DNA of 64,000 nucleotides. Origin: Scyliorhinus canicula (taxonomy: Eukaryota). Positions 30,710 to 63,950 of this stretch are shown here, one piece after another (position 1 is the stretch's first letter; each line of letters begins with the position of its first letter). The notes under the pieces were generated by a model. That model ran no database searches, had not been told where the DNA came from, and was given only the letters and a program-made list of their open reading frames with translations. The stretch covers positions 120,568,636 to 120,632,635 of the forward strand of contig NC_052161.1 in the NCBI RefSeq assembly GCF_902713615.1, read 5' to 3'. The translations under genes and the position numbers were made by a program.

Positions 30710-30864
30710 TGCGAACATAGGAATTTATACCAATCTGTGAAACAAGGACACCAATACATTCTCACTCTTGGACATTCATAGTGTTTCAGAGGAATCCTCC
30801 CATGTGTGATGCAATAGATGATTCAAGCACTAACAAATGTGTAAATGGTCATTCAGTCTTGGTT

Positions 30865-30870
30865 TTTATT
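30865..30870 (-). terminator. Probable AKR7A copy 1 polyadenylation signal
   Basis: TTTATT on + (AATAAA on -) ~390 nt past the stop codon; conserved in copy 2 at ~60758-60763. Confidence 0.5.
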
Positions 30871-31257: not shown

Positions 31258-36371
<5,114 letters not shown>

Positions 36372-36436
36372 GGCGTCCTGGGCTCCGCCGAGCAGAGTTC
36401 TGAACACTGCTGGAGAATAGACAGGAGACCCAACCT

Positions 36437-36935
36437 CCCAAACCCCGCCCACCCGAGAGCACGTCCCAAACCCCGCCCACCCGAGAGCACGTACCAAACC
36501 CCGCCCACCCGAGAGTACGCCCCAAACTCCGTCCACCCGAGAGCACGTCCCAAACCCCGCCCACCCGAGAGCACGTCCCAAACCCCGCCCACCCGAGAGC
36601 ACGTCCCAAACCCCGCCCACCCGAGAGTACGCCCCAAACTCCGTCCACCCGAGAGCACGCGCCAAACCCCGCCCACCCGAGAGCACGTACTAAACCCCGC
36701 CCACCCGAGAGCACGTACCAAACCCCGCCTACGCGGGGGCACGCCCGAAACCCCGCCCACTCGAGAGAACGTACTAAACCCCACCCACCCGAGAGCACGC
36801 CAAAGACCCCGCCCACCGGAGGGCACGCCCAACTACCCTGCCCGCCTTAGGGCACGCCCCAAACCCCGCCCACTCCAGGACGCGTCACCAAACCCCGCCC
36901 ACTCCATGAAGCATGCCACAGCCCTGCCCACTCCA
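36437..36935. repeat. 28-bp GC-rich minisatellite (AAACCCCGCCCACCCGAGAGCACGTCCC)n, ~17 units, upstream of AKR7A copy 1
   Basis: Directly visible 28-bp periodicity. A variant unit recurs at 36511 and 36623 (112 bp = 4 units). Units decay rightwards. Confidence 0.95.
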
Positions 36936-37289
36936 TGGTGGGTTCCACAAACCCATCGTGTCAGAGATGGCACTTGGGCCAAAGGGGATCAAAGGATATG
37001 GAGGAAGACGGGATTAGGCTGTTGAGGTGGCAATCAGCCATGATCATAAGTAAGGGTGGAACAGGGCCGAATGGCCTCCTCCTGCTCCTATATTGTTTCT
37101 AACCGTGTCCACTCTAGAGCATGTCCACAAACTCCATCCACTCCAAGCGCCACCAAACCCCACTCCCCGGAACGTCTCCAAACTCCGTCCACTCCCAGGT
37201 ACTTGTCAATTCTAAAACCAGTGATGCAAATGACATTGAATACCAACTACTCATGGTTCTCAGAAATGGTAATTTCCAGTCCCATGTGA

Positions 37290-38880
37290 AGCAAAATGTT
37301 TTTCACAATAATACTGCAGAAGAGGCCTTGTGGCCCATCGAGTCTGCACCTACACAAGAAAAACACCTGACCTGCCTACCTAATCCCACTTGCCAGCACC
37401 TGGCCCATAGCCTTGAATGGTATGATGTGCAAGTGCTCATCCAGGTACTTTTTAAAGGATATGAGGCAATAGTTATTCCCTATTTGCGCCCCTCATGATA
37501 TTGTACACCTCGATTAGGTGAATTCAACATTCTGAATTCTCCCTCTGTACCCGAACAGGCACCGTATGGCAACTTGGTGATTTTCACAGTCACTTCATTG
37601 CATTGTTGATGTAAACCTGATGTAGGGGCTGTTTAGCTCACAGGGCTAATCGCTGGCTTTGAAAGCAGACCAAGGCAAGCCAGCAGCACGGTTGGATTCC
37701 CGTAACAACCTCCCCGAACAGGCGCCGGAATGTGGCGACTAGGGGCTTTTCACAGTAACTTCATTTGAAGCCTACTCGTGACAATAAGCGATTTTCATAA
37801 TGTAAGCCAACTTGTGACAATAATAAAGATTATTATCATGTCACCCCTAAGTCTTCTCTGCTCCAGCAAAAATAACTCAAGCCCATCCAACCATTGAATA
37901 TTTCCTTGTCACATTACTCCTTCCAAACTGTATCGCCTCACACTTTTCAGGGTTACATTCCATTTGCCACTTTCTGCCCATTTGACCATCACATCAATAT
38001 CTTCCTGTAACCCAAGACACTCAACCTCATTGTTAACCATCCGGCCAATCTTTGTGTCAACCCCAAACCACCTGATCCTACCCCCACATTGTAATTTAGG
38101 GCACCCAGAGAGCAGCACGGTGGCCTAGTGGTTAGCACAGCTGCCTAACGGCACTGAGGTCCCAGGTTCGATCCCGGCTCTGGGTCACTGTCCGTGTGGA
38201 GTTTGCACATTCTCCCCATGTCTGCTTGGGTTTCGCCCCCACACCCAAAAATGTGCAGAGTAGGTGGATTGGCCACACTAAATTGCCCCTTAATTGGAAA
38301 AAATAATTGGGTAATCTAAATTTTAAAGAAAAAAAAGAAAAATTTAGGGCACCCAGCACAGGTCCCTGTGGTACACCACTGAACGCTGGCTTCCAGTCAC
38401 TAAAGCAGCCTCTGTCATCACCCTTTGTCTCCTACACCTAAGCCAATTTTGAATCCACCTTATCAACGTAGGGCAGCATGGTGGCGCAGTGGGTAGCACT
38501 TTTGCCTCACGGCGCCAAGGTGCCAGGTTCGATCCAGGCTCTGGATCACTGTCTGTGTGGAGTTTGCACGTTCTCCCGTGATTGCGTGGGTTTTGCCCCC
38601 ATAACCAAAGATGTGCAGGCTAGGTGGATTGGCCACGCTAAATTGCCCCTTAATTGGAAAAATGAATTGGGTACTGTAAAACAATTTTAAAACTTACCTT
38701 GTATCCCACATACAATTCTTCATAAGTTTCCCATCTGGGACCATGTCAAAGGCATTGATGAAATTCATGTAAACAACATCAACTACACCACCCTCATCTA
38801 AACACCTGGTCACATGCTCAAAAAATTAAATCAAATTTGTTAGGCACGACCTCCCTCTGACAAAGCTATGCTGACTATTC
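37290..38880 (-). mobile_element. Fragmented CR1 with nested SINEs
   Basis: DTKIGR…LQEDID motif (ORF 37909-38118), PQG region near 38365, CR1 tail near 37320-37460. Confidence 0.7.
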
Positions 38881-39722: not shown

Positions 39723-42700
39723 GGGACTTCCGATGGCGGCTATGAAGGAGTAGGTTGCATACTTGGTGGCTCCCGTTCGGGTCGGAACTTTGGACCTTTT
39801 TCCCCGATTTTTTGTCAGATCTGAAGTGGAAAATCGATGTTGGACGCAATTGTGAAGAGGAATCCTACATCAGTGCATGGAGAAGCGGACCAGGAGTGCT
39901 CACAAAGGAAGAAATAGGCAAACGGAGAAGGCTTGGACTGAGGCTGCTACGGGTGAAAGCATGGCGGACGACCGGAGTCCTGGCTCGACAAACCAGCGGT
40001 CGATGCAGCAGTTGATGCAGTTTATACAGGAGGGCTTCGCCAAGCAGAAACAGGAATGCTTGGACCTGATTAAGGACTTCGATTGCGCGGCTGGAGCTTA
40101 GATTGGATGCTCAAGACCTGGCGATCCAGAAAGTGGAGAAGGCACTGACTGAGCAGGAGGAACACCAAGCTGCAGTGGAGTTGGAGGTGGGGATGTTGAG
40201 AGACCAACAGAAAAGACTCCAGGAGAAGGTGGAGGATCTAGAGAACAGGTCCCGCCGGCAGAACCTGAGAGTCTTGGACCTCCCAGAGGGATCCGAAGGA
40301 ACGGACGCAGGGGCATACATAGCGGCTATGTTTGAGAAGCTACTGGGGGAGGGGACGTTCTCCTGACCCTTGGAGGTAGACAGGGGCCACAGATCTCTAC
40401 AAGGAAGCCGCGTGTGGGTGACCCCCGAGAGCAATGGTGGTGAGATTCCACAGGTACCTGGACAAGAAGTGCATTCTACGGTGGGCCAGGCAAACGTGGA
40501 TCTGCAAATGGGAGAACAGTGTCCTGCGTATATATCAGGATCTGAGCGCAGACGTGGCCAGGAGAAGAGCGGGGCTCAACCATATAAAATCGACCCTTTT
40601 AAGAAGAAGGTAAAGTTTAGACTACTGTACCCGGCCTGTCTTTGGGTTACGCACGAAGAGCAACATTTCTATTTTGATTCGCCCGAGGAAGCGATGGACT
40701 TTGCAAGACGGAAAGGGCTAGTATTGGACTGAGGTATTTGGATTGAACTTTGCTGCAGTGTTCATGTGGTTTTCTTTTTTGTTTTTCTCTCTTCTCTTCA
40801 GTTAATTTTAAAAAAAAAGAAAAGTTTTTGTCTTCGGTTGTTACTTGTAATGCCTTTTGTGTTGAGTTGGGGTCTGCGGACGAGCTGCTTGAGTTAAAAT
40901 TTGCATTTGCACTGATGGGGGTTGGAGGTGTGAATGTTAGATGTTTGATGTTTGATCTTTTTGATTTTCTTTGCGTGTCTCTTTTGGGCAATTGGGTTGG
41001 GATTGTTTACATTTGCATATGTGTGTCCGGGCGGGAGGGAACAATAGGTGGGGAAATGGCTGGTGCCATGGGCAGGGGGCCAGCAAGCTAGCTGGGCGGG
41101 CTAGCTCACGGAGGCGCAGTGGGGGGTGAGCAGATGGTATGCTTGTTGGAAGGGGCTGTGTGTATGGTGCTGTTACTGAGGGGGAGGGGAACTGTTCTGC
41201 TGACAGGGGAGGGATTTTTGCTGTGGGACAATAGGGAGGTCGGGGATAGAGGCGGCCTGGGGGCGGGCCTGTGGATGCTTGGGGCATGGGCTGGAGACTG
41301 GTCCAGAAAGGTGATGGCTGATCGGCGGAGAGGGGGGATGAGAAGCCCCCCAACCAGACTGATCACATGGAATGTAAGAGGGCTAAAAGGGCCGGTTAAG
41401 AGGGCAAGCGTGTTCGCGCATTTGAGGGGACTGAAGGTGGACGTGGCAATGTTGCAGGAGACGCACCTTACATTAACTGGCCAGGTCAGACTAAGGAAGG
41501 GATAGGTCTGACAGGTTTTCCACTCGGGGCTGGACTCTAAGACTAGAGGGGTCGCGATCCTGATTAATAAACGAATGTCATTCGAAGCTGGAAGAATAGT
41601 TGTGGACGTGGGGGGCCGGTACATAATGGTCAGTGGAAAGCGGGAGGGGCTGTCGATGGTACTCGTGAATGCGTATGCGCCGAATTGGAATGATGTGGAG
41701 TTCATAAGGAGGATGTTGGGAAGGATCCCGGACCTGGATTCACATAAGCTGGTAATGGGGGGGGGGGGGGACGGACTTCAACACAGTCATTAACCCAGTG
41801 ATATACCGATCTAGCTCAAGGACAGGCAGGGTGCCAGCAATGGCAAAGGAACTCAAGAGGTTTATGGAGCAGATGGGGGGGGTGAACCCATGGAGATTTG
41901 GGCGGCCGAGAGAGAAGGAGTTTTCCTTCTATTTGCACGTGCATAAAGTGTACTCCCGGATTGACTTTTTAATCCTGATCAGGGCTCTACCGATGGGCGT
42001 AGTGGACATGGAGTACTCAGCGATTAAGATCTTGGATCATGCCCCGCACTGGATTGACCGACCGGTGAGCAAGGAGAGTAGCCAGCGCCCGCACTGGAGG
42101 CTGGATGTGGGACTTTTAGCTGATGAGGAGGTGTGTGGCCAGCTGAAGAAATGTATCCTGAATTATCTGGAAGTCAACGACACGGGGGAAGTTTTGGCTG
42201 CGTGGTCTGGGAAGCGCTGAAGGCGGTGGTTAGGGAGGAGCTGATATTGTATTGGGCCCACAGGGAGAAGGCAGACAGAGCAGAGATGGTCCGACTGATA
42301 AAGGAAATACTCCAGGTCGACAGGAGGTATGCGGAGACCCCAGAGGCAGGGCTTCTGATGGAACGATGGAGGCTACTGGCGGAGTTTGGCTTGTAGAGCA
42401 GCTGAGGAAGGCGAGGGGGGCGATCTATGAATATGGGGAGAAGGCCAGTAGAATGTGTGATGATATGATCTGCATACTCGTCTGCCATTGGGCCAGAACG
42501 TCGGCTTACCATTGGCCCTGGTCGGTCATGTGCCTCTCGACCGATTGGCCGAGAGGCTGAGTTAACCACGCCTCTATTAACGAGGTATAAATGCTCAAAC
42601 GCCTGACGATCGTCCCTTTCCACTGTAGACGATCGCAGAGCTGTGTTCTAGTTAATTAAAGCCAGACTTTGGTAAATCACTCGCCTCTCGTGCAATCGAT

Positions 42701-45450
42701 GGTACATCAGAATGCTTGTGCAGCAGCTCAGAAAGCAGGAGGCGGCCAGGGGCTTGGGAAAGTAAGGGTCCGAGATGGGAATCTGGTCGGAGATTCAGCT
42801 GGGGTCAATAAGGCGTACGAGGAATTCTACAGCAGACTACGAGTCGGAATCCCCACCGGGGCCAGAGGGGATGAGGCAATTCTTAGGGGGGCTGAAGTTC
42901 CCAAAGGTTGATGAAGACTTGGTAGAAGGGCTGGGAGCCCCGATTGGGTTGGAAGAGATAGCAGATAGGCTGAAGGCCGTGCAGTCGGGAAAAGCCCCGG
43001 GACCGGATGGGTACCCTGTGGAGTTTTACAAAAAGTTCTCTGGGATGCTGGGGTCACTGCTGATGAGGGCATTCAATGAGGCAAGGGAGAATGGGGGGTT
43101 CCCCCGACGATGTCACAGGCCACTATGTCATTGATCCGGAAGCGGGATAAGGACCCAGAGTTATGCAGGTCCTACAGACCGATCTCCCTACTAAATGTAG
43201 ACGCCAAATTGTTGGCTAAGATCTTGTCCTCAAGGATTGAGGACTGCGTCCTGGATGTGACTGGGGAGGACCAGACGGGATTTGCTAAGGGGAGGCAGTT
43301 GGCGGACAACGTAAGAAGGCTGTTGAATGTTATCATGATGCCCCCCGAGGGTAGGGACGTAGAGGTAGTGGTCACAATGGACGCAGACAAGGCATTTGAC
43401 TGGGTGGAATCTGAGTATCTGTGGGAGTTATTGGGGCGGTTTGGAGTTGGGTGGGGCCTCATTGACTGGCTCAGGCTACTGTATCAGGCGCCAATGGCAA
43501 GTGTTTGGATGAACAGGCTGACATCGGGCTATTTTAGGCTACACTGGGGGACAAGCAGGGGTGCCCCCTCTCCTGCTGTTGTTCGCACTGACCATAGAAC
43601 CGCGGGCAATTGCGTTGAGAGCCTCAAAGGGCTGGAAGGGACTGGTCTGGGGGGGGGGGGGGGGGGGGGGATGTTGAACACAGAGTCTCGCTGAACGCCG
43701 ACGATCTGCTCTTATATGTGTCGGACCCATTGGAAGGGCTGGAAGAAATTATGGGGATTCTGGGGGATTTTGGCCGGTTTTCGGGGTATAAATTGAACAT
43801 GGAGAAAAGCAAGATGTTCGCGATCCAGGCAAGGGGGAAGGAGAGGCGATTGGGGGAACTGCCGTTTAGAGTGTTGGGGGAAGTTTCTGGTACCTAGGCA
43901 TCCAGGTGGCACGGGAATGGGAACAGCTGCACAAGCTAAATCTGGCCCGACTAGTAGACCAAATGAAGGAGGGTTTTCGGAGGTGGGACGTGCTCCCGCT
44001 GTCACTGGCTGGGAGGGTACAGACAGTGAAAATGATGGTTCTGCCGAGATTCCTGTTTGCGTTTCAGTGTCTCCACATCTTTATTCTTCGATCCTTTTTT
44101 AAACGGGTCAACAAGATGATCTCGGGCTTTGTATGGGCGGGTAAGAACCCGCGAGTTATAAAGAGGATGTTGGAGCGCAGCCGGGGGAGGTGGGGGGGGG
44201 CGGACTGGCACTCCTGAACTTTAGTAATTATTACTGGGCAGTGAATATAGCCATGATTAGGAAGTGGATGGTGGGGGGGGGGGGGGGGGGGGGGGGGGGG
44301 GGCTCGGTGTGGGAGCGAGTAGAGGCAGCATCTTGTAAGGCCACTAGTCTGGGGGCATTGGTAACGGTGCCTCTACCGTTCCGGCCGGAACGCAACTCCA
44401 CCAGCCCCGTGGTGGTGGCGGCCCTGAGAGTCTGGGGGCAATGGAGGAGACATGTGGGAGCAGAGGGAGCATCGGTCTGGTCCCCAATCTGTAATAATCA
44501 CCGGTTTGCCCGGGAAGGTTAGATGGAGGGTTCCGGAGATGGAAGCGGGCAGGGATAGAGAGGATGGGCGATATGTTTATAGAGGGGCTTTCCCAGCTTG
44601 AGGGAGCTGGAGTTGAAATTTGAACCGACGGGAGGGAGTGAATTTAGGTACCTGCAGGCGCGAGACTTCCTACGAAGGCAGGACTCAACCTTCCCACTCC
44701 TGCCAACCAAGGGGGATACAGGACAGGGTAGTTTCCAGGTGTTGGTGAGAGAAGGGAGGGTTTTGGACATTACGTTGAGTAGAGTCAACGCGTCCACAAC
44801 ATGTGCCAGGCTCAGCCTGATACAGTTTAAGGTCGTTCATCGGGCTCACATGACAGTGGCCCGGATGAGCAGGTTCTTTGGGGTGGAAGACAGGTGCGCA
44901 AGGTTGCGGGAGGACCAGCAAACCATGTCCAGCTGCCCAAAGCTTAGGGGATTCTGGCAGGGGTTTGCAGACGTCATGTCCAAAGTATTGAAAACAAGGG
45001 TGGCACCGGGTCCAGAGGTGGCAATTTTCGGAGTGTCGGAAGACCTGGAAATCCAGGAGGAGAAAGAGGCAGATGTTATGGCCTTTGCTTCCCTGGTAGC
45101 CCGGAGACGGATACTATTAGCTTGGAGGGACTCAAAGCCCCCGAATTCGGAAACCTGGCTATCTGACATGGCTAGCTTTCTCTGTTTGGGGAAAATCAAG
45201 ATCGCCATGAAAGGGTCGATGTCAGGGTTCACCCGGAGGTGGCAGCCGTTCGTCGACTTCTTCAGGGAGAATTAACCGTCAGCAGAAAGGAGGGGGGGTT
45301 AGTTTAATGTAGAATAGGAGTCTAGAAAAGATGGGACCTGTGAGAGAGGAAGATGGCTTTTGCACTATGTTTATATTTGTATGTACATTGTTTCTTCTGT
45401 TACTGTTATAAAACCATAAATACCTCAATAAAATGATTATCAAAAAAAAA
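39723..45450 (+). mobile_element. Full-length decayed L1-clade LINE (ORF1 plus ORF2 with APE and RT)
   Basis: 15-bp TSD GAAAATGTGGTTGTC (39708-39722, 45451-45465). ORF1 from 39877 (LENRSRRQNLRVLDLPEG). ORF2 has ITWNVRGL, LQETH, KAPGPDG and [18 protein letters not shown] and polyA tail present; many stops and frameshifts. Confidence 0.95.
42456..42709 (+). mobile_element. Solo LTR nested in L1 ORF2
   Basis: TG…CA termini, 5-bp TSD GAATG (42451-42455, 42710-42714), internal TATAAA. L1 frame YGEKASRM|L resumes across it. Confidence 0.85.
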
Positions 45451-48130
45451 GAAAATGTGGTTGTCACTAGATTATGTGAGAGAGAAACCAGGCACTTCAG
45501 TCCTGTCAGTTTAAAGCCAGTTGTGGAAAGCTATTAGAATTGGTCATTGGGGGCAGAGTGCCTATGAACTTTTTTCTCTATTTGTCCATGGGATGTGGGC
45601 GTCGCTGGCTGGGCCAGCATTCATTTCATCACTGATGGCATTTAAGAATCAACCTCATTGCTGTGGGTCTGGAGTCACATCTAGGCCAGACAGGAATAAC
45701 AGATTTCCTTCCCCAAAGGACATTAGTGAACCAGATGGGTTTTTACGACAGTCGACAATGGTTTCATGGTCACCTTTAGACTTCGAATTTCAGATTTTTA
45801 TTGAATTAAAATTTCATCACCTGCTATGGCGGGATTCAAACCTGGGCCCCAGATCAGGACTCTGGGTCTCTGGATTACTAGCCCAGTGACAATACCACTA
45901 CGCCACTGTCTGCCGCTAACTGGAGCTGAGCAGAAAGCCAATAAAGATTTGTTAAGGACATGTCATGTGAGACCAATTTACTTGAATGCTTTGAGAGGCA
46001 GTTGCTTACAAAGGTAGATAAAGGAATCAACAAATATTAATCAAATAAACTACCAGAAAGCATTTGCTAATGTTGCACAGAAAAAAAACATCAAAACTGC
46101 AAATGCACAATATTGGGTTGGAAATTGAAGACAATGGGGATAAAGTACTCAGGTTGGCAGGAGTGACATGGTGTAGGGATGCCGTGGAGCCTCAATTTGG
46201 TTGAAGAAAGAATTATATATGCAAGGTGACACCAGGTTAGCAGAGACAGTTAAGTAATCCAAATAGGACGAGAAAATTGCAAAGGGAAACAGGAAGTTTG
46301 AGTAGAAAGTACTGTAGCAAATTAATACAATGTGGGTAAATAAAAGTCACCTACTTTGAACTCAAGGTATTTTCTGGGGACCATTCTATGAAATTCTCTC
46401 CCCCAAACTCCTCTCCATTGTCATTCAAGATTCTTAAGATCCACTTCTTTGATTGAGCTTTTTAAAAATAAATTTAGAGTACTCAATTCTTTTTTTCCCA
46501 AATAACGGGCAGTTTAGTGTAGCCAATCCACCTAGCCTGCACATCTTTGGGTTGTGGGGGGTGAGACCCACGCAGACACGGGGAGAATGTGCAAACTCCA
46601 CACGGACAGTGACCTGGAGCCGGATTCGACCCGGGTCGTCAGTGCTGTGAGGCAGCATTGCGAAACACTGCGCCACCATTTGGTCTAAGCTTTTGATCAT
46701 CCCTCCTAACATCTCGTTCTCTAGTTAAACATCTTTGTGTCTTATTATACTTCTGTGAAACACCTTGGGCAATTTCCCTACACCACGAGAAAGGATCATA
46801 GAATTAGAATCACAGAACTTACAGTGCAGAAGTGGGCCATTCGGCCCATCGAGTCCGCAATGGACCTTGGAAAGAACATGCTACTTAAACCTACACATCC
46901 CCGTATCCCAGTAACCACACCTAACATTTTTGGACACTAAGGGCAATTTAGCATGGCCAATCCACCTAACCTGCACATCTCTGGACTGTGGGAGGAAACC
47001 GGAGCACCCTGAGAAAACGCACGCAGACACAGGGAGAACATGCAGACTCCGCACAGACAGTGACCCAAGCTGGGAATTGAACCTGGGTCCCTGGAGCTGT
47101 GAAGCAACAGTGCTAACCACTGTGTTACCATGCCACCCTAAGAAAGAAGGAAGTGAACTTGGAAATTGTGCTTTTAAAGAAGCTGTTAATAAATTTCACA
47201 CAATATCCTTTCAACAGTTTAATATTTATTTAAATACTTTATTTCCTGCAATTTAGAAACAGTACAAAGACAAAAAAATACACAAACGTGACACAAATTC
47301 CTGTTTCTAATTTATAAAATATCTTTTACGCAGCCAGTTTCTTTCATATCGCGATGCAGTTGAAACCAAAGTTTCATCCCTCTCCAGGATACTGCAACCA
47401 GTCTCTGGTGGGGTAGGACAGGCTTGCTCCCTCCTGTCTGATGAAGGCCATAATCTCGCACACTGGTGACTAATTCCATATTATGGAAGCAGGGAGAAAA
47501 CCACTGGGATGGCTGCAGAATCTAGATTACAAGTCTTGTGCATTTGTACAATGCTGTATAATTGCTCTGCAGTCTGTTCAGAGTCTGACCACTAAGTTAA
47601 AAAGCAATGCCTAATCATGCAGGAGATAAGCTATTTCAAAGCTCAACCGAGAACCATAAAATTACACCAAATTTCATCTCATCCTCAATGCATGTAGCAC
47701 AATGCAATGTGCATGGTCAAACCACAAATTATCTCGACAGTACAAAGGGGTTAAAACCCATAGATGCCAATTCTCGGGATTTGATCCCTGCTCATGTTTC
47801 ACATTAACACGAGTTTTGAAAGTTCTCTTCTACCCCACCAGTCAGTTCAATGATGAAACATGTCCAGTATCTTGGGATCTGTTTGATTTGGTAATGTGGC
47901 TACTGGAATTGAAGTGCAATCAGGAGATTTTCTGAGCTCTCTCCTCAACATACAACTGCATCTATAAAAAAGTTTTTAAAAACATGAATCAACTGCAAAT
48001 CTCTGTGTGTATAGTGGAAAGCAACACTGCTGAATACATCAGTTTATAAAGAGTTACTGTTATCATTTCCTTCTGATATAATATCAGCAGCAGCAGTTAC
48101 AATAAACTGGGGTAATTCTACAATCCCATG

Positions 48131-51100
48131 CAGTGGCGGACTGGGTCTAAAAATATTGGTTGCCAAGAGACAAAGGGGACCCACCCACAACTACAATGCT
48201 ATCATTTAATTTTCATAACGAATAAATAAAATTTTCAAAAAATACATATGGAAAAAAGGGTACAATTAAAACTTTTGTGGAAAAAATGTGTATTTCTTAG
48301 TAATTACAGTGTACATGTACTGTACATATTACTGGCAGTAGATACCAAATACAAATACAGAATGTTATAATTGAATTTTTTATTTATTTTTTTAAATTTT
48401 AAGTAATTGGTTGATATTTTTTAATAGTTTACTGCACAATTTACACATTAACAGATAGTTCAAAAGCACAATAGAGCATTGCATGCAGTCCACTATATTA
48501 AGAGCAATCGTTTGTGTTCGCTAGATGATTGTGCGAATCTGCCAATAATTGCTTCTGCATCCAATTCATCTAACAATTCCTTTTCAATGGATAGCAACAT
48601 GTATGATTCCAAATTCTCCTCAGACAGCGAATTTCTTAACCTTGTCTTTATGATCTTTAGCTTTGAAAATGTCCTCTCACATTGGACTTGAGTAACTGAT
48701 AGTGTGCAGATGACTTTATAAAGTTCATAAAGGTTATCATATGCTTTGTCATGAAGTCTGTTGGATGCCAGAATTTGTAATACACACGATGGGCAAGTGC
48801 TGCAAATTTTACAATTGTTGCAACTGGAATCCATATTCTCACCATCATTAAGCAATAGCTTTAATACATCAAAGTTTGAAGCAAAAGAAAACAATTCCAA
48901 TATTACTTGATCTTTGCTGATTTGTGGAAACAGCTTAATAATACCTTCCAATGCTTCATCTTCAAGGCCCTTCTCTGCAATAGTTTTAAACTTTGCTGGG
49001 TCCAAGCAGGACAAATCTTTATACAACTGTTTGTGTTGTACAAAGCGTGATTCTAGTGACTGGACAATGCGATCCATTATGAGGTTAAACACATTTACTC
49101 GAAAATCAGCTAGAGAATCTGAGGAATTTCTTTCATCATCAATAAGCTAATCTGCCATTCTTTTCTTCTTTCTCTGCCTCTTAATTGGCAATGCTGTTTC
49201 CAACGCATCAATTTCCAATGTTTGATTTTCATCCATATTCATCTGTGAAATCCTGTCATTACATTTATTTACAAATTCCAAAGCCTTGCTGTGAACGTTA
49301 TCAAATGTTCTTGTCTGTTCCTTCAACTTTATTGTAGCTGAATCTACCAAACTCCATGCAGTAAACATATCTAAACCACTTGTCTGTAGATAACTTGATA
49401 ACGGGGTTGTGGTTTCAAATATATACAAGTAAGTAAATGCTGTCAATATGGTTTCAAACTTTAGAAGACTTTGAAATAAAACATTTGCTTCATGTTTTGT
49501 TTTTGCATCAAACTTTTCTGAATCTTGTATCATTGATAAGCATGTCAATAGATTTACGAAAGTACTGGCAGCGGCATCATCAAAACGTCCAAATATAGTT
49601 GTTGCTGCATTGGATTTTCCTGACCATCTGGTCTCACCAATTAGCTTTAATCGTTTCATTTATTCTTGTCCTAAATGTTTTCCAACAACTTCTATCCATA
49701 CAGCCATTCTCTTGTATCATGCTTTCACAAAAGTTGCTATATTCTGGAGAAAATTGAAAAAAGAAACTGCAGGCATACAACATTTTGTTGTTTCAGTTAT
49801 CACCAAATTCAAGACATGGGCATAGCACCATATATGAACATGTTGATCAGCTACATCAGCAATTTTACTTTGTAAACCATTATACTGGCCATGGTAGCTT
49901 GCAGCGCCATCTGTGCTATCAGATAAACATTTTTGGGGGTCAATTTTAAGATGCTGTAATGTTTCACTCAATAGGTCAAAAAGTCCCTGTCCTGTACCAT
50001 CATTACTTGGCACAACTGAAAGTAGTCGCTCACAGATAATACCTTTAAGCACATACCAAATAATAATGCTAAACTGATCGATGGATGAATTACCTTGTGT
50101 TGATACAACCTGAATAGAATAATATTTTGCTTGAGAAACTTCATGACTAATTCTTTCTTGTATCATATTCTTCATAATTTTGATTAACATGTTTATAGTT
50201 ATTTTACTCAGGTATGTAACAAGTCCACCACAGCCTTTACTTTGAGCCTTTCCTTGTTGCTCTAATTGTTTGATTCTTTGTTTAGACTTGTTTTGCACTG
50301 CAGAAACGTGAGCTGCCATAATGGGGTCATATTTTGCCATCAACTGCACTGTAGCTAAAAAATTGCCACGATTCAGAACCTCATTATCTAGAGTGTAGGC
50401 CGATTCATTTCTGTGACCTTGAAAAGAAAGTGCTTGCTTGCCAAACATCTTTATGATGTCTATAATCCTCATGACAATACTCGCATGTCATTGCATCATC
50501 ACCATGAGCATTGTTTCTTGCTTCAATACTTCTTCTTTCCTTTTAATTAGTGATGCTACAAAAAATTTATCTAAGGTGCCATCATTAACCACACTGATAT
50601 ATTGCCGAGCATTTCTGACATGTGTTGTTGTTGATTCATGTAAAGTCAAGCTCTGGCTAATACGCCTGTAGTCACTAAAGCCATGTACAAAGGGTGATGG
50701 ATTACAAGTGTTGGGAAACTCAAAGGCTAAGCAGTATGAACAATATAAGCATCTATTTTCTTTGTTATATGTTAGCCATTTTCTTGGGACTGAGTCATTC
50801 ATAATTTTCCTCGCATACAAACGAGCATCAAATGGCAGATCATCAAGTGGCTGAAGTGGATGTTCAGCAAAAAACTGTTTTAGCTTTGCTCGTGATGGAT
50901 ATTGGAAGATTCCAGTAATTGATCTTTCATTTTCTTGCGTAGGTTCATTTACAGGATGTGCTTCAGAAACCAAGTCATTTATGTTTGAAGGAATATCTGA
51001 TTCCCTGTCACTAGTTGAAGCTATGTGTTCAGATGTTGCAACTACAGGCAGTACAGATACCGGAACAAGGAAGCCAGAAGAAATATTGGGCCTGGGTTGA

Positions 51101-52544
51101 TTGGTAATGGATGCACTTGTATTTGTCTCTACATTCAAAGTAGCTCTTCTCTGTTCTTGTAACTCGCATGTCATTGCATCATCACCATGAGCATTGTTTC
51201 TTGCTTCTTGATTATTTGTTGCAGAACTGGATATTGATGTGGATTGTGCTTGTGGTATTATAAACTCTGTAATAGGCCTGCATCGCTTGGCTGATTCCTT
51301 CCTTTCTGCTTCTTTTTGTTCTTTGCATTTTAGTGACCCAGATTTATGCTTTTTCTTTTCCATGCTGATAGGGGTAATATTCCTGAACTAAAAACTTAAT
51401 TAAAAATAGCCCACATTGGGAAAAATGAATATTGATGATTGTAAGAATAACTTGAAGGAACGCCAGATAAACCCCTACTTGATAAAAAATATAAAATAAC
51501 TTACTTACACTTCAATAGGCTATATTCATTAGTCAATACTACTGTGGCCTATGCAGCTTCAGAAGAGGAGACAATCCACTGTCCAGTGTTCACACCAGCA
51601 AGCAACTGAGACAACTGTTGAAACTTAGAAGTTTGGTCCGACTATAGTAAGACATTAAGAATGGTCCCACGACCAGTTAACATGTCCAGTTTGGCACCAG
51701 TGTAGTGTTACAAGTCACAACCCTTTGAGCTTACCGATCATGGCATTTCACTTCAATATCTTTGACCTCATGATTCACGGTCAAAGGTACTGCTTCTCCT
51801 TTTCGGTGACCTCACGACCCTATGTACTGCTTGATATCCTTTCAAGTTGCCGACCATCTCAAATCACGAACTGTAACTTTATCTTTAAATTCACACACTC
51901 TTGCTGAAAACGTGGATTTCCAACTACGTCCGACCCGGGTGAACCAGCCCCCCCCCCCCTCCCCCCTCCACTCCTTTTCACATCCGTTTAGCACTGCTTC
52001 GTTCCTTCATACACAGTGATTATTTGTTTGTTTCTTTATTGCATTTTTATTTGGTATTGCTCTTTTTAAAAACAATTATATTTTATTAAGTTAGAATACA
52101 AATCTCAGGAAAGAAGTTGGAGATTTATTTATCTAATTAATTATAATTTTTAAGGGCCCTTCAGAGATTCATGGGCCCCTTCTTGGCTCTCCGGGCCCCA
52201 GACCGATGTACCGGCTGAACCAAGACTACTGCTTGATATCCTTTGAAGTTGCCGACCATCTCAAATCACAAATTGTAACTTTATCTTTAAATTCACACTC
52301 TTGCTGAAAACATGGAATTTCCTTAATTATGCCCGACCCGGGCCCCCCTATTCCACATCCTTCCACTACCTCCCCTGCTTTGTTCTTTTTCATGCACTGC
52401 TTATTTGTGTCCTGTTCTCTTTTTTTTCTTATTCCTTTTTATTATTAAAACAGTTGTCTGTGTTTGTTTCTTTATTGCATTTTTATTTGATATAGGGGCC
52501 CACTTGCCATCGGGCAAGCTGGCACCCTGGCCAGTCCGCCACTG
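48131..52544 (-). mobile_element. Full-length inactive hAT transposon (ZMYM1/Tip100-like transposase)
   Basis: Perfect 14-bp TIR CAGTGGCGGACTGG (48131-48144 / 52531-52544). Imperfect TSD ATCCCATG / ATCATG. Transposase fragments 50488-51363 (TTF-type Zn finger), 49717-50472 (DUF4371-like), 49147-49659 (ETRW), 48493-49092 (CERTFSKLK dimerisation motif), broken by stops and frameshifts. Confidence 0.93.
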
Positions 52545-52764
52545 ATCATGCATCTGGCATCTAATGGTTTCAGAACTTCATAGAAAACAAATTTGAATGG
52601 ATGATCTTTCATGTGCTATTTTCAACAAATGGCCTCACTTACCACCCAAAGCTACCACCTAATACATTCTTCTGGTCAATAAAAGTTTCATAAACATCTA
52701 ACAAGTTTACAATCAAAGCTCATGAGCTACTACACAAGAACCACAAACAGAACATAAGACACCC

Positions 52765-53234
52765 TGTCTTGTTATGCTCTTAGCGTTGCATAAGCGGCTT
52801 CCTTGTGATGCACTTGACAAAGGAAGGTTTAGACGTGGAGATAACTTCAACATGTTTATTAAACTATTTACGCTTCTTCTACTCGGGTTCGCCACTACTG
52901 TTAATTCTTCTATAGCTACTCAGACTGACTAACCAGTCTGCTACAATCCACGTGGTGGGAGTGATATTGAATCAACCGTGTCTCTACTCACTGACTGTCT
53001 CCACTGGAAAGAGGAAGATCATGTGTGTTGTGTCCTTTATATATGGGTTGGTGTAATGCCCTCCTGTGGTCGTGTCACCTGTGTGTATCGTGAATACCCA
53101 TTGGTCATGTCCTATCTAACTGCTCTATTGGTTGAGTGTCTGTGTCATGTCTCTGGTGCTCCCTCAAGTGTCTAGCTAGCCTACATGTATTTACATTAAC
53201 CCCTTGTGTGTTTACAGTGATGCATATCACCACA
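52765..53234 (-). mobile_element. Solo LTR
   Basis: TG…CA termini, 5-bp TSD CACCC (52760-52764, 53235-53239), TATA and AATAAA on the minus strand. Confidence 0.8.
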
Positions 53235-56226
53235 CACCCCTTCCTAGAATTAAAGGTGTTACCTTAAGATATCTGATGTCAGTTTTCAGTGGGATTAACC
53301 GTGGCTCTCGCATGTTCACTTCCTGTTCATCAGCATAGATCCATGGGAAGTCCTGCACCAGAATGGTGTTGGATAACGACCTCCAGGATATTGATCGAGT
53401 GACAAAATGGGAATTGTGATGATACGTGTCCAAGTCAGGAAAGCACGTGACTTGAGGGAAACTTACAGGTGACATTGTTCCACACGATGTTTCCGCTTAT
53501 AGTATTTTAGTGGTAGCTTGTTGGATTAGAGATGTTCTTGAAACAGGGCGGCACGTGGTACAGTGGTTAGCACTGCATTCTATGGCGTTGAGGACCCGGG
53601 TTCGAATGCCGGCCCTGGGTCACTGTCTATGTGGAGTTTGCACATTTTCCCCGAGTTTGCGTGTGTTTCACCCCCAAAATCCAAAGATTCATTGGTTAGG
53701 TGGATTGGCCACGCTAAATTGCACCTTAATTGGAAAAAGATAATTGGGTACTCTAAATTTATTTTTTAAAAGAGGTGTTCTTGAAACAAGCTTTATGCTA
53801 GTGGCGTAGATGGTGGATATTGAATTCAGTGAGTGGTGTTTCTAACCAGATGTTGCATGTATCCCATCGAATCAAATGGAGAAAATTATGTCACAATTCT
53901 TAGTTGAGCCTTCTGGATGACAGGGGAAAACTTGAGGGGCTAGGCGGCGAATGTTTTGCCCTGGCCACAGTAATGATATGGCCAATTCAGTTAAGCTACT
54001 GGTCAGTGTTGTTGATGCTGACAATCCTGAATGTTTATGGCGTTTTCTCCTTCCAAAGGTTGCCGAACTGTCCACCGCCATTCCCAACTAGATGTAGTGA
54101 AGCTACAGAACGTTTCCTTGATCCAATGACTGGAAAAATGTATAATGTGAACACTCACAATCATCCACACATTGCATAGCACAGACTTTAGCCCAGTGTC
54201 TACCCAGATGGTATACTCACCTTTATAATTTGAATTTTCTCCATGTTTCAAGTGGCAACATCTCGTGTATGAACCAAGACAGTAAAGGTATAGCCTAGAA
54301 ATAAACAGCACAATTCGAATCCATATACGGGAGGAAAATCCAGGAGGAATTTATTCCAGCTTCTGCATTCAGTATTGCTTTATAAATTTCTGCAGTCATG
54401 CTTCCGCAGTAGCTCAACAACTCGTCCACAGAGCGCTGCCGGCCTTGAAAGTCCCAACTCAATTCCCACTCGGCTAAATTAGCTGAGCATCTGGTACAGC
54501 AGTTAGGGTTAAAAAAGCTTCAGTGATGTACTGAAGGAGTGTTGCATGGTGTGAGGTTTGTTGCTTTGGATGAAACATTAAATCGCCTGCCTGCCCATGC
54601 TACCAATACTAACAAAAACAAATGATCAGGTTATTTATTTATTTGCTTGATGCTGTGGAAATGTAGGTTTCTGACTAATATAGCAAATGGATGATGGGAT
54701 GCTTGGCCATAATTATAATGTCCCCACAAAACAACTGACAGGGCAAGAATAAGAAACAATCTATTTGAAAAACATTATCAGTTAAACATAAATTGACATC
54801 TGAAACCACAGACCTTGTGCAAAGCACTTTGACCTTGTTAAAGTGAGTATGCAGCCAGAAATGAAGCAGACCCCTTAACTGTGTTAACCCCGTCTTTAAT
54901 TATATCAATGGGAAATTAAAAAGTTATCACAAACTGTCACATACAGACAGAAAACGTATTGTGCTCCTTTCATTGTAGTTTCGCTTCTTAAAACAATCTG
55001 TTTCTGTATATAGTTACACACATAAGCTAATTAACTCAGAGTCATGAATTACCTGTTTACTCCAGAGTATAAATATATCAGAATAACCATTGTACTGCGG
55101 ACTCTTTCCCTAACCGTTCATAAGGTGCAGACACCCTTTGTGCAAGTAAAAATGAAACTAACTGTGGATGTTAAACTTATATTTTATTGTCAGAATCTTA
55201 CTCAGAATCGGGTTTTCAACAATGCATGACTGTGTTAGACACGTACTGGCCATACATTTGCCGACTAAAGAGTAACATTTCTAGACTAGGCTTGAAAATC
55301 AAGAATTGCCATTGACATGCATTTTCAAAAAAGCAGGTAAAAAAATGACGGAAATACGCGACATCCATAAATGTCAGTAGAAAAATATGAATTAACAATT
55401 TAGTCTGAGAGTGTTCCACCAAGGGGCATAGTGGTTAGCACTGCTGCATCACAGCACCGATGATCCGGGTTCAATCCCAGCCCCGGGTGACTGTCCATGT
55501 GGAGTTTGCACATTCTCCCCATGTCTGCTTGGGTTTCACCCATACAACACAAAGATGTGCATGTTAGGTGGATTGGCCACGCTAAAGTGCCCGATCATCG
55601 GTGCGAATGCGCAGTGCGGCCAAATTTTTTTAATCTGTTCCTGGCCATTTTGAAGGCCTCTCGCAGCCGCGTGATCGGAAGCGCCGCCATGGATGGCTCC
55701 GCGACCTTTCCTGACACCCACCCGCGGGTCGCGTCCCCGAGTTTGACAATGCCTGTTATTGACTAAATAACTCTTGTTTTTACAGCTCCTTCCTGAGCTT
55801 TTCACAGCTAATGAACAGCTTTGGCATGTAGTCACGATTGTAGGTGGCAGCCAATTTATTGGTAGCACGATACCACTAGAGCAGTGAGCAAAATGATCAT
55901 TTTTTTTTCATTTTTTTAAATAAATTTAGATTAGCCAATTATTTTTTCCAATTAAGGGGCAATTTAGCGTGGCCAATCCACCTACTCTGCACATTTTTGG
56001 GTTGTGGGGGCGAAACCCACGCAGACACGGGGAGAATGTGCAAACTCCACACGGACAGTGACCCAGAGCCGGGATCGAACCTGGGACCTCAGCGCCGTGA
56101 GGCGGTTGTGCTAACCACTAGGCCACAGCAAAATGATCATGATCAGCTTCTTGGTAGATGATCGAGGAGAATAGATGTTGACCAGAATGTCCTACTTTTG
56201 GAATAAGGCCCTCGTATATTTTATAT

Positions 56227-57668
56227 CAATCTTTTTCAAGCCCTTTTTTCCCCTTGACCTACTTTTGTCAACTGGTCCACCTTTGCAAGGAACGCCACGG
56301 TCACTTACCTTTAATGCGAAAGGGGAGCCTGCTTGGTCCTCATGATCTCACTTGAATCAGGTTCACAGGCGCAGAGGGCAAAGTGCATTCGAAGATGCAG
56401 ACTTCAGCCAGTTCCTTTGTGCCATCATCGTGAAAACTGAAAATCCAACCTCGAACTTGTAGGTCACCGTGAAGCCAATAGCAACAACATGCTTGTTTGA
56501 AATGAAATTAAATGAAAATCGTTTATTGTCACAAGTAGGCTTCAAATGAAGTTACTGTGAAAAGTCCTTAGTCGCCACATTCCGGCGCCTGTTCAGGGAG
56601 GCTAGTACAGGAATTGAACCTGTGCTATTGGCCTTCTTCTGCTTTATAAGTCTACTGTGCTAAACCTGCCCCTCAGTCAGCACTGATACTCTTGGGTGTT
56701 GCTATTAAGAATACTGACAGCTTTTAGCTTATTAATGATATGCATTCACAGTTCTGGTACAGCAGGATAGTTTTTTCATTTGGAGTCAGCTGGAAGGTAA
56801 TATCTGACTCTGGAGTCTCTCCCTCAAAAGGAATCTTTCACCCTCAGCTTACCTCATTTGCCGGGGCAACATGGTGGTGCAGTGGTTAGCGCTGCTGCCT
56901 CACGGCACCAAGGTCCCAGGTTCAATCCCAGCTCTGGGTCACGGTCCGTGTGGAGGTTGCACATTCTCCCTGCGTTTGTGTGGGTTTCGCCTACCACAAC
57001 CCAAAGTTGTGCAGGGTAGGTGGATTGGCCACACTAAATTGCCCCTTAATTGTAAAAAATGATTTGGATACTCTAAATGAAAAATAAAACTTATCTCATT
57101 TGCCAGTACTTCCCTGCATATAACACACATGGGCTTTACATCCTTATTTGCATTGGCACAATTGACAAAACCATGCCTCAATAAATCACCTTTATACTGC
57201 TTTGTTCCGAGTTCAGTTTCTTATTATAGGCTGTTAACCAGAGGCCCTGAGCTCTGTACGGAGTCGACGCTATCACTGCTCTGTCCTGCCCTGCACTCTC
57301 CTGAGCACCTCTCTCCAACAGATTCAGTTGAGATCCTGTCCAATAGACACACTGCAAAAACCATCCATCTTCACAGTTCTCTTGCTTTGCCTCTGAGCAG
57401 TTAGAAAATGGAAGAAATTCCTCCGTGATGTGGCACAAAAAGCAAGTACATAGAGGGTTCCTGACCTGCTCACTGTTGTCACTTCTTGCAGGAAGACTGC
57501 ACACGGCCTCATTTCTTCCCATTTAAAAGGCGGCTATGATGGTCATTCTCAATAGAAATGCCGGTAACGGCCACTAGTCACTTCTCCCGCGCTTGGGGAC
57601 GCCGCAGCCGATCGTTCAGCGACCCTCCAGACACCCACAGGTTGCCCGCCACACTTTGAAAAACCCTA
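56227..57668 (-). mobile_element. Deleted hAT Charlie/Buster-like element (copy in duplicate block 2)
   Basis: 8-bp TSD TTTTATAT (56219-56226, 57669-57676), degenerate TIRs, and BED-finger remnant HGFVNC…PMCVICREVLANE (ORF 56939-57181). Interrupted by SINEs. Confidence 0.75.
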
Positions 57669-58658: not shown

Positions 58659-60573
58659 CCGTACTTTCCGGACTATAAAGCGCACCTGACTATAAGCCGC
58701 ACCCACTGATTTTGAAATTTTTGTTTTATTTTGAACATAAATAAGCCGCACACGTATATAAGCCGCAGGTGCTTACCGGTACATTGAAACAAATGAGCTT
58801 TACACAGGCTTTAACAAAATACGGCTTGTAACAAAAATAAAAAATTAGCGGTAAAGAATAGCCTACCAAGAAAGTCATTGGTCACTGTGGAGCGAAATCA
58901 ATCCGATTAAGCTCTTAAGATTAACATAGAATCATCAGTTTGAAACATTAAAAATAAATAAATCATGTGTAAAAAGAAGTATTTTATTACTGATCGTAAT
59001 CAAGATATCACCAACCCAGGTGATCAGAGTCACTATCCTCCTCTTGTGCACTGAAACCACTGAAGTCATCTCCTTCAGTGTCAGAGTTGAATAGCCTCAG
59101 AATTGCTTCATCTGATGTTGGATTGTTTTCATTGTCGCTCTCATCACTTTCATCCGGAGGCAAATTTCCCGCTGAGCTCATGCTGCCCTCTTCAACATGC
59201 AGCAATCCAGCTTTTCGAAACCCGTTGATGATAGTGGATTTTTTAACAATGCTCCACGCTGTCAGGACCCACTGGCAGACTTGACCATAAGTTGCTCTTC
59301 GCATGCGGCCCGTTTTAGTGAAGGATTTCTCCCCACTTGTCATCCAAGCCTCCCACTGAACACGAAGCGCCACCTTAAATGCACGATTTAAACTGATGTC
59401 GAGTGGCTGTAAATACTTTGTTGTGCCCCCAGGAATCACAGCTGGAATTGAGTTTGTCCTCTTGATGGCTTCTTTCACAGAATCTGTTATGTGGGCCCTC
59501 ATGCTGTCCAAAACGAGCAATGCCTTGTTCCTGTGAAAGAATCCTCCCGGTCGCTTGCCGTAGCACTCCGTATGCCATTCATGCATTAGGCTTTCCGTCA
59601 TCCATCCTTTCTTGTTGACTTTCACAACAATTCCTGTAGGGAATTTTTCTTTTGGTATCGTCGTGCGTTTAAAAATCACCATCGGTGGAAGCTTTTCTCC
59701 CGATGCCGTGCAACTCAGAACACAGGTGAAGTGCGTTTTTTCATGCCCAGTTGTTTTCAGCATGACGGATGATTCACCTTTCCTGTTGACAGTCCGAGTG
59801 AGAGGCAGGTCAAATGTCAGAGGAACCTCATCCATATTTATGATATTGTGCGGGCCAATGGAATGCTCTGCTATCATTGCATCAGTGAATTTGCGGAAGT
59901 TTGAAATTTTTTCCTCGTAGTCGGGAGGGAGCTGCTGACACAAACTCGTCCGTACCCTGATGGACAGGCCTTTACGTCTCATAAATCTGAGACACCACGA
60001 TGGTCCACCTCTAAAATTCTCAAACTTCATTGCGGTGGCGATTGTTTTGGCTTTCAGTCGGATCTGTACAGTTGAAACACCTCGGCCGTCTGCTCTCTGC
60101 ATGTTGACCCAGTCTTCGAGCTCATTTTCTAGTTCGGGCCATCTGCTTTTCTTCCCTCTGAAAGCTTTAGTCGTCTTTTTGCACTGAGTCAATTCCTCAC
60201 GCTGCTGTTTCCAACGTCTTATCATCGACTCATTAAGACCAAGCTCTAGTGCAGCAGCTCTATTTCCTTTCCCAACAGCCAGATCGATCGCCTTCAACTT
60301 GAAAGCTGCATCATATGCATTTCTCCGTGTCTTTGCCATGATGAGGGTGACAAAATGACTACCGTAATCAGAATGATGGGATGTTTGAGCGCGCTCGATT
60401 TAATCTAAACAGTAAACTAAAAAGTTACATTGTTTTACCTTGACCCGTTACGCAATTTCATTGGTTTAGTGAAAAGAAAGCGGGAAAAATCCATAAATAA
60501 GCCGCGTCGTTGTATAAGCCGCGAGGTTCGAAACGTGTGAAATAAGTCGCGGCTTATAGTCCGGAAAGTACAG
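58659..60573 (-). mobile_element. Full-length pogo-superfamily DNA transposon (DD35D, POGK/Passer-like)
   Basis: 20-bp TIRs with 1 mismatch (CCGTACTTTCCGGACTATAA at 58659-58678 / TTATAGTCCGGAAAGTACAG at 60554-60573). Subterminal TAAGCCGC repeats. Absent from the paralogous site at ~30368. Confidence 0.93.
59008..60339 (-). CDS. Intact 443-aa pogo transposase (Brinker-like HTH, CENP-B HTH, DDE_1 domain)
   Basis: Uninterrupted ORF with YDAAFKLKAI, GGPSWCLRFMRR, NMDEVP, LVLDS and LQPLD; 35 residues between the 2nd and 3rd Asp. Confidence 0.92.
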   Translation of the reverse strand: MAKTRRNAYDAAFKLKAIDLAVGKGNRAAALELGLNESMIRRWKQQREELTQCKKTTKAFRGKKSRWPELENELEDWVNMQRADGRGVSTVQIRLKAKTIATAMKFENFRGGPSWCLRFMRRKGLSIRVRTSLCQQLPPDYEEKISNFRKFTDAMIAEHSIGPHNIINMDEVPLTFDLPLTRTVNRKGESSVMLKTTGHEKTHFTCVLSCTASGEKLPPMVIFKRTTIPKEKFPTGIVVKVNKKGWMTESLMHEWHTECYGKRPGGFFHRNKALLVLDSMRAHITDSVKEAIKRTNSIPAVIPGGTTKYLQPLDISLNRAFKVALRVQWEAWMTSGEKSFTKTGRMRRATYGQVCQWVLTAWSIVKKSTIINGFRKAGLLHVEEGSMSSAGNLPPDESDESDNENNPTSDEAILRLFNSDTEGDDFSGFSAQEEDSDSDHLGW

Positions 60574-61353: not shown

Positions 61354-63323
<1,970 letters not shown>

Positions 63324-63635
63324 CTATAAAGAAATCCACATTAAAACATTCTGCTTTTTACAAGTTATTTCACAGTAGCAAGATCAGCAAACACCAACTG
63401 CATCATTAATGGAAACCCTGCCCTCACCACAAAATAAAGCCATGCAAAGCTGTAGCATCAGATCATCTCAGAAATTGCTCAAAGTGTTTTCTATGATATA
63501 TATCACTCTAAAGAGCACGACTGTTTTATACCTTTTGTTACAAGACCCAATGACATAAATCCTTTACTGGCGTTTGAAGGAATGTTGGCCATGACTCAAG
63601 CAGATCTCCCTGCTCCGCATCATAAATCGTGACTT

Positions 63636-63950
63636 GGGCAACACGGTAGCACAAGTGGATAGCATTGTGGCTTCACAGCGCCAGGGTCCCAGGTTCAATT
63701 CCCTGCTGGGTCACTGTCTGTGAGGAGTCTGCACGTTCTCCCCGTGTCTGCGTGGGTTTCCTCCAGGTGCTCCGGATTCCTCCCACAGTCCAAAGACGTG
63801 CAGGTTAGGTGGATTGGCCATGATAAATTGCCCTTAGTGATCAAAAAAGGTTAGAAGGGGTTATTGGGATAGGGTGGAAGTGAGGGCTTAAATGGGTTGG
63901 TGCAGACCCGATGGGCCGAATGGCCTCCTTCTGCACTGTATGTTCTATGT
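63636..63950 (+). mobile_element. V-SINE with CR1-derived tail (HE1-like); representative copy
   Basis: Same head; tail GGGCCGAATGGCCTCCTTCTGCACTGTATGTTCTATG. Others at ~19235, 20128, 21040, 22805, 35610, 46810, 57990. Confidence 0.88.

Follow-up and report, generated by a model that had tools for sequence, protein, structure and literature searches.

The 64-kb window (the whole stretch of DNA that was analysed) contains, between its two AKR7A copies, the last three coding exons of MAD2L2, the gene encoding REV7. We consider it likely, with a probability of roughly 0.8, that this fragment is an unprocessed, 5'-truncated MAD2L2/REV7 pseudogene that arose by a simple head-to-tail tandem duplication. 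On this explanation a REV7 tail lies between the AKR7A copies because MAD2L2 is the neighbour of AKR7A and the duplication copied its tail. The three marks by which an unprocessed partial duplicate can be tested were all found: introns are kept, the 5' truncation falls at the breakpoint, and disabling mutations are present.

The pseudo-exons, termed A, B and C, lie on the minus strand at 54221-54294, 53263-53352 and 47920-47961 and represent MAD2L2 coding exons 6, 7 and 8 of eight. Exon A, located by its splice sites and by tblastn, lies between an acceptor ending in tttctag/GC and the donor AAG/gtgagt, and translates as (G)YTFTVLVHTRDVAT, an in-frame stop and NMEKIQIIK. For exon B, recognised by its splice sites and a MAD2B match, the acceptor is gtgcag/GAC and the donor AAG/gtaaca; it reads DFPWIYADEQEVNMREPRLIPLKTDIRYLK, and its open frame matches solved MAD2B chains (E 2e-10). 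Exon C follows the acceptor ttatag/ATG and encodes MQLYVEERAQKIS plus the stop codon, a peptide that matches the C-terminus of Scyliorhinus torazame REV7 at 100%. The two introns measure 868 nt and 5301 nt, AG/GT is present at every boundary, and the exon boundaries are those conserved in MAD2L2. Together the exons spell approximately the last 68 residues of REV7 (residues 143-211 of 211), and about 90% of these match shark REV7. A tblastn search of the window with shark REV7 returned E values of 8e-14, 2e-08 and 7e-03 for the three exons, so that their identity as REV7 is far above chance.

The remainder of the gene is missing from the window. REV7 residues 1-142 gave no credible tblastn match anywhere in the 64 kb, and skate MAD2L2 exons 1-5 gave no tblastx match there. 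Compared with MAD2L2/REV7, the HORMA-domain subunit of DNA polymerase zeta and shieldin, to whose coding exons 6-8 it is homologous, the fragment is thus without the first 142 of 211 residues and most of the HORMA domain; with residues 143-211 only, it holds no complete HORMA domain in an open frame. These results bear out the preliminary description, which had reported an intron-containing REV7 fragment with three spliced-type exons at these places and no upstream exons. Two other classes of copy were considered and rejected: a processed pseudogene is ruled out by the introns at conserved boundaries together with the native synteny, and a functional REV7 gene by the absent residues 1-142, the in-frame stop and a frameshifted stretch.

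The surviving exons carry several lesions. In exon A, a TGA at 54250-54248 replaces an Arg CGA codon, and there are two missense changes (Cys>Tyr and Val>Ile). Skate carries CGA at the same codon, which agrees with an earlier guess of CpG-type decay from CGA to TGA. Exon B contains a further missense change (His>Tyr) and, as an addition to what had been described before, deletions of 2 nt and 1 nt spaced 17 nt apart, which turn MTSDILK into DIRYLK and shift six codons. The missense changes number four in all and fall at positions invariant across the elasmobranchs compared. In a comparison of 13 sequences from sharks, skates and rays, the final 68 residues of REV7 are invariant except for the last two positions and one residue in Narcine. 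The fragment bears four or five non-synonymous changes and two indels in 206 nt, a load that fits the per-lineage change of about 0.06 per site expected from the divergence of the two copies. With its in-frame stop and frameshifted stretch, the fragment cannot make REV7 protein, and, judged from the sequence, the coding lesions show no constraint at the protein level. We infer that the fragment is functionless.

The fragment forms part of a duplicated unit whose limits are well defined. The last exon of MRTO4 lies on the plus strand at 27740-28020 (ending in EIEMDDEQE, with the stop at 27869-27871 and a poly(A) signal at 27996), and the unit begins about 115 nt past that signal. Copy 1 of the unit extends from the MRTO4 3' flank to MAD2L2 intron 5 (28112-55753, now ~27.6 kb). 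Its first part (28112-37300, minus strand) contains the sequence downstream of AKR7A and then the whole of AKR7A copy 1, with exon 1 at 36293-36120, exon 7 at 31437-31258 and a CpG-rich promoter region. Copy 2 starts at 55754 with the AKR7A downstream region and 3'UTR, followed by AKR7A copy 2 on the minus strand up to position 64000; exons 7 to 3 of this gene lie within the window (61354-63323). Homology between the units begins at 28112 and 55754, respectively, and is still running at the window's end. Both AKR7A copies remain under constraint. At the duplication junction (55753/55754), MAD2L2 intron sequence meets sequence homologous to 28112 onward, 1459 nt upstream of exon A. The coordinates confirm that the fragment sits at the AKR7A duplication junction, co-oriented and downstream of AKR7A copy 2; a block start at about 55760 had been proposed, and copy-to-copy homology sets it at 55754.

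Noncoding DNA of the two units is separated by K2P distances of 0.09-0.17, and copy 2 has acquired a SINE (55904-56126), a pogo element (58659-60573) and a second SINE (63635-63949) in its own lineage. These differences bear on the idea of an assembly artefact, in which the AKR7A units would represent two haplotypes or a false duplication and the fragment would be the genuine end of MAD2L2, altered by sequencing errors; we regard this as hardly credible. A divergence of 9-17% in noncoding DNA, accompanied by whole transposon insertions (pogo and three SINEs), is far above haplotype level and argues against the haplotype reading, and read errors would not account for as many as seven independent changes in a protein that is otherwise invariant. 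In addition, the stretch is present in DNA runs of the same organism, and runs from two other samples contain 34-50% of the 31-mers sampled from 52545-55900.

The source of the REV7 exons becomes apparent from the gene neighbourhood in other elasmobranchs. In 9 assemblies from eight species, a HORMA/MAD2L2 gene is followed 0.9-9.8 kb downstream by a co-oriented Aldo_ket_red gene. These assemblies include Leucoraja erinacea, Scyliorhinus torazame, Carcharodon carcharias, Cetorhinus maximus and Heterodontus francisci; three assemblies that share one protein, two of them Chiloscyllium, were also counted. The elasmobranch order is DRAXIN(-), MAD2L2(+), AKR7A(+), with Draxin seen upstream in skate, in an older S. 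torazame assembly and in the three assemblies that share one protein. In Cetorhinus, MRTO4 comes next after AKR7A on the opposite strand (one assembly). A tblastx comparison of the skate locus with the window recovered MAD2L2 exons 6, 7 and 8, the 3'UTR and AKR7A exons 1-7 in the same order. The spacing is similar as well: the poly(A) signal of the fragment lies ~10-11 kb from AKR7A copy 1, and in S. torazame 9.8 kb separate the intact MAD2L2 from the AKR gene. One catfish has MAD2L2 without AKR7A beside it, and adjacency of the two genes is shown here for elasmobranchs only. No relevant paper emerged from a literature search on MAD2L2, AKR7A2 and synteny.

Our result is mainly a correction of the earlier reading, which human gene order had misled. 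It had been claimed from that order that replication template switching had brought DNA from a remote MAD2L2 locus to the junction, making this a complex duplication. The sharp junction, which is not repeat-mediated, speaks for such an event, and a CpG-rich 152-nt piece abutting it would be in keeping with a junction formed by replication or end joining. In the nine elasmobranch assemblies, however, MAD2L2 is the adjacent upstream gene rather than a distant one, and the fragment retains its native order, orientation and spacing to AKR7A copy 1, 3'UTR included. Capture from a distant locus is therefore extremely unlikely; with the two genes side by side in sharks, skates and rays, no exotic mechanism is needed.

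The tandem duplication would have proceeded as follows. The ancestral minus-strand order would have been MAD2L2, AKR7A and then the convergent MRTO4, as in other elasmobranchs. The duplicated segment would have reached from the MRTO4 poly(A) flank, across AKR7A and the spacer that separates it from MAD2L2, to a point within MAD2L2 intron 5. As the fragment stands at the native place of the MAD2L2 tail relative to AKR7A copy 1, one breakpoint inside MAD2L2 suffices. The upstream unit would have kept its connection to MAD2L2 exons 1-5 and should therefore form a working MAD2L2, whereas exons 6-8 and the 3'UTR of the downstream unit would have been left without the promoter and the first five coding exons. 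These orphaned exons would since have decayed neutrally, accumulating the nonsense change, the two frameshifting deletions and the four missense changes described above. From the gene order in the nine other elasmobranch assemblies, we predict an intact MAD2L2 just past the window's end, upstream of AKR7A copy 2. Such an outcome is ordinary for a tandem duplication.

A different topology would have the AKR7A segment alone (28112 to about 37300) copied into MAD2L2 intron 5, leaving the three exons as the sole tail of the gene. AKR7A copy 2 runs off the window end, so that both topologies look alike within the window. The insertion would, however, imply a MAD2L2 gene that encloses an AKR7A copy and is either dead or misassembled here, with exons that bear a nonsense change and two frameshifts in a protein otherwise invariant across elasmobranchs. 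Loss of REV7 is also unlikely given its role as a core component of both polymerase zeta and shieldin. Moreover, the intact S. torazame gene, which encodes 211 aa and spans 17.7 kb, has no AKR gene inside; its AKR neighbour lies downstream. Taken together, this evidence renders a nested insertion quite unlikely.

Beyond the coding exons, the fragment retains a MAD2L2 3'UTR remnant on the minus strand (47220-47919), also missing from the preliminary description. About 300 nt after exon C align to the skate 3'UTR with ~75-78% identity, and poly(A) signals are found at 47243, 47230 and 47223. On the other side of the fragment, the kept 3' part of MAD2L2 intron 5 (minus strand, 54295-55753) fills the space between exon A and the junction. 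It contains a SINE (55425-55601) and, abutting the junction, the unique CpG-rich piece of 152 nt (55602-55753; CpG observed/expected 1.19). Should this piece prove to be filler, the duplication would have been slightly less simple than a clean tandem event. The boundary itself is sharp, with no repeat shared across it. A blastn comparison of 54295-55760 with the skate locus revealed intron similarity only over 16 nt beside the exon, along with SINE-like matches, and an Rfam scan of 53660-57000 gave no match.

The intact splice sites, 3'UTR and poly(A) signals raise the question of whether the fragment has been co-opted, either by supplying alternative terminal exons and a poly(A) site to transcripts that read through from AKR7A copy 2, or as a separate non-coding transcript. 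It is co-oriented with AKR7A copy 2 and lies ~6.3 kb downstream of the poly(A) signals of that gene; the CpG-rich piece at 55602-55753 is a candidate promoter; and presumed RNA runs contain 20-27% of the words sampled from 53200-54400. This share is close to the SINE share of the same interval (230/1201 nt, ~19%), so that it may be a repeat signal and was not counted as expression. The absence of protein-level constraint argues against co-option as well, which we consider unlikely overall, though such a use would be compatible with an origin by tandem duplication. Very doubtful, too, is the proposal, drawn from sequence features, that the REV7 tail could serve as a working end of a transcription unit, by readthrough from copy 2 or by transcription from the CpG-rich piece into a non-coding RNA with the MAD2L2 3'UTR. 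If true, such an RNA could vie with the genuine MAD2L2 message for its regulators.

For annotation, the decoy REV7 exons could corrupt gene models and read mapping for both MAD2L2 and AKR7A in this shark. Cetorhinus has a single AKR7A between MAD2L2 and MRTO4, which dates the duplication of AKR7A to after the divergence from lamniform sharks. Beside two AKR7A copies under constraint, the fragment also offers a small yardstick of neutral decay.

Among known systems, the fragment resembles unprocessed partial pseudogenes that border tandem segmental duplications; such pseudogenes keep introns, splice sites and 3'UTR, have lost the promoter and 5' exons because the duplication breakpoint fell inside the gene, adjoin a duplicated neighbour, and gather nonsense and frameshift changes. 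It does not differ from them in kind; its oddities are the CpG-rich junction piece and a ~4.4-kb hAT DNA transposon relic on the minus strand of the last REV7 intron (48131-52544). The relic ends in perfect 14-nt terminal inverted repeats (CAGTGGCGGACTGG), and its transposase frame, interrupted by a few stops, includes a C-terminal piece that matches Dimer_Tnp_hAT. With complex duplications of the FoSTeS/MMBIR type, the locus shares a sharp non-repeat breakpoint and possibly a short filler; it differs from them in that the REV7 segment comes from the adjacent gene and keeps its native order and orientation. A decayed REV7 copy is likewise found in another catshark, S. torazame, as a processed MAD2L2 retrocopy (scyTo_0012784, P0157). 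That copy is intronless (a 564-nt gene), nearly full-length and adjoins a kinesin gene, whereas the fragment described here contains introns, represents just the 3' end and occupies its native locus.

Three minus-strand exons lying between the two AKR7A copies encode the C-terminus of REV7 (MAD2L2): exon A (54294-54221), exon B (53352-53263) and exon C (47961-47920). Exons A and B are bounded by canonical splice sites on both sides; exon C has a canonical acceptor and finishes with the native stop. Splice sites and tblastn placed all three, to the base, where the preliminary description had them. The open frame around exon B matched solved human MAD2B chains (E = 2e-10), and REV7 proteins were recovered by a phmmer search of the whole library, with the little skate protein P0001 as top match. 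Using shark and skate REV7 queries, exons A, B and C were the sole credible tblastn matches in the 64-kb window. Residues 1-142 gave no credible match in the whole 64 kb, confirming the earlier report that upstream exons are missing. Skate (Leucoraja erinacea) MAD2L2 comprises eight coding exons, and only exons 6, 7 and 8 have equivalents in the window. Past the exon C stop, ~300 nt can still be aligned with the 3'UTR of skate MAD2L2 (identity about 75-78%), and poly(A) signals (47243-47223) follow this remnant.

The preliminary description attributed these exons to a piece of a distant MAD2L2 locus captured during a template-switch duplication, reasoning from the human gene order, in which MAD2L2 lies megabases from EMC1-MRTO4-AKR7A. 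Elasmobranch gene order does not support this origin, as MAD2L2 adjoins AKR7A there. We compared gene tables of Leucoraja erinacea, Scyliorhinus torazame, Carcharodon carcharias, Cetorhinus maximus, Heterodontus francisci, two Chiloscyllium assemblies and a third assembly with the same protein. Directly downstream of intact MAD2L2, at a distance of 0.9-9.8 kb, they place an aldo-keto reductase gene that has the same orientation and encodes 346-351 residues. Draxin is found upstream of MAD2L2 on the opposite strand wherever the flank extends that far, and in Cetorhinus MRTO4 lies 1.4 kb beyond the reductase, on the opposite strand. The adjacency is absent in one catfish examined, and we therefore claim it for elasmobranchs only.

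The window repeats this arrangement. On the minus strand, REV7 exons 6-8 and the 3'UTR are followed by a spacer of ~10-11 kb, AKR7A copy 1 (minus strand; from exon 1, 36293-36120, to exon 7, 31437-31258) and the convergent MRTO4 (stop at 27869-27871, poly(A) signal at 27996), and a tblastx comparison of the window with the skate locus revealed exon-by-exon colinearity. SINEs and a LINE-like element occur in the spacer. The stretch at 40000-46000, lying between the REV7 3'UTR and the promoter of AKR7A copy 1, has a high GC content and a strong GC skew, and its plus-strand frames resemble LINE endonuclease and reverse transcriptase (e.g., ...FSFYLHVHKVYSRIDFLI...); this is probably an L1-like insertion making up much of the 10-kb spacer.

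Self-comparison showed that the AKR7A units are homologous from 28112/55754 to the window end, interrupted only by unit-private insertions (SINEs at 28675-28897 in copy 1, and at 55904-56126 and 63635-63949 in copy 2, and a pogo element at 58659-60573 in copy 2). The homology boundary is sharp, with the MRTO4 3' flank on the left of copy 1 and, on the left of copy 2, unrelated sequence that runs on into the REV7 exons; the duplicated unit is therefore 28112-55753. It begins ~115 nt past the MRTO4 poly(A) signal, and its other end falls within intron 5 of MAD2L2, 1459 nt before exon 6. Head-to-tail duplication of this unit, a plain tandem event, would yield the observed arrangement, so that capture from elsewhere is not needed. 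The AKR7A duplication would thereby have taken in only the 3' end of the adjacent upstream gene, MAD2L2, and the second unit, only part of which lies in the window, is predicted to carry intact exons 6-8 still joined to exons 1-5. The fragment is an ordinary unprocessed, 5'-truncated pseudogene that probably arose from tandem duplication. This kind of pseudogene is well known, while the present instance appears undescribed according to a literature search. The main value of the result is the correction of a human-based synteny assumption; it also flags decoy REV7 exons for annotation.

Directly inside the duplication junction lie 152 nt (55602-55753) that are unique within the window, with a GC content of 0.60 and a CpG observed/expected ratio of 1.19 (vs 0.34-0.48 in flanking sequence). 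No Rfam match was found for this piece; possible origins are a CpG islet within a MAD2L2 intron, part of a young element, or filler from junction formation. If filler, the joining step would be end-joining or replication-based, but even then the REV7 segment would not count as captured from a distant locus. The 152-nt piece includes the strings GCCGCCATGG, CGGAAG and GCGAATGCGCA, which resemble YY1, ETS and NRF1 sites.

Among 13 sequences from sharks, skates and rays, the C-terminal 68 residues of REV7 are identical save the final two positions and one Narcine residue; in the chimaera Callorhinchus one further residue differs ahead of the exon 7/8 boundary, where its protein prediction runs off. 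Relative to elasmobranch REV7, exon A carries Cys>Tyr, Arg>stop and Val>Ile, and exon B His>Tyr. The end of exon B reads DIRYLK instead of MTSDILK owing to a 2-nt deletion and, 17 nt on, a 1-nt deletion that regains the frame after a local frameshift. Nucleotide alignment to skate supports the earlier guess that the stop arose by a CGA>TGA CpG transition, and the missense changes and two deletions extend the damage listed then. Given these further lesions in exons A and B, the sequence argues for pseudogene status without resting on the TGA alone. Over 206 nt, the REV7 exon sequence shows four or five non-synonymous changes and two indels, a load consistent with neutral decay since the duplication.

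Cetorhinus has one AKR7A between MAD2L2 and MRTO4, and the duplication therefore postdates the split from lamniform sharks. Noncoding divergence between the units is 0.09-0.17 (K2P), versus 97-98% identity of the AKR7A exons common to both copies; on this comparison, both copies appear to be maintained under constraint or partly homogenised by gene conversion. Across the five common exons (31258-33739 and 61354-63323), only ~8 of 224 residues differ, and introns differ by 8-13%.

Same-organism DNA sequencing runs contain the fragment stretch. Runs guessed to be RNA contained 20-27% of sampled words of 53200-54400, a share that is not evidence of expression because SINE sequence fills about a fifth of this interval. 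This tRNA-headed SINE (~220 nt) occurs in dozens of copies in the 64 kb at 80-94% identity, with sites including 28675-28897, 53543-53772, 55425-55601, 55904-56126 and 56864-57096, and marks several post-duplication insertions.

Inside the last REV7 intron lies a 4.4-kb hAT DNA transposon relic (48131-52544) whose terminal inverted repeats match perfectly over 14 nt (CAGTGGCGGACTGG); the 8-mers on either side, ATCCCATG and ATCATGCA, are not a clean target-site duplication. Its transposase spans >940 codons in one frame (51387-48496) with only a few stops, and a C-terminal piece matches Dimer_Tnp_hAT (E = 7e-09). The AKR7A copy 2 downstream region contains a pogo-type element (58659-60573) with an intact 443-aa minus-strand ORF (60339-59008), for which no called gene is on record. 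The element is absent at the matching copy 1 site (around 30367), and its insertion thus postdates the duplication. S. torazame has another REV7-like gene model (P0157, GCA_003427355.1), which is 564 nt long, lacks introns, carries several deletions and adjoins a kinesin gene; it is a processed retrocopy unrelated to the fragment.
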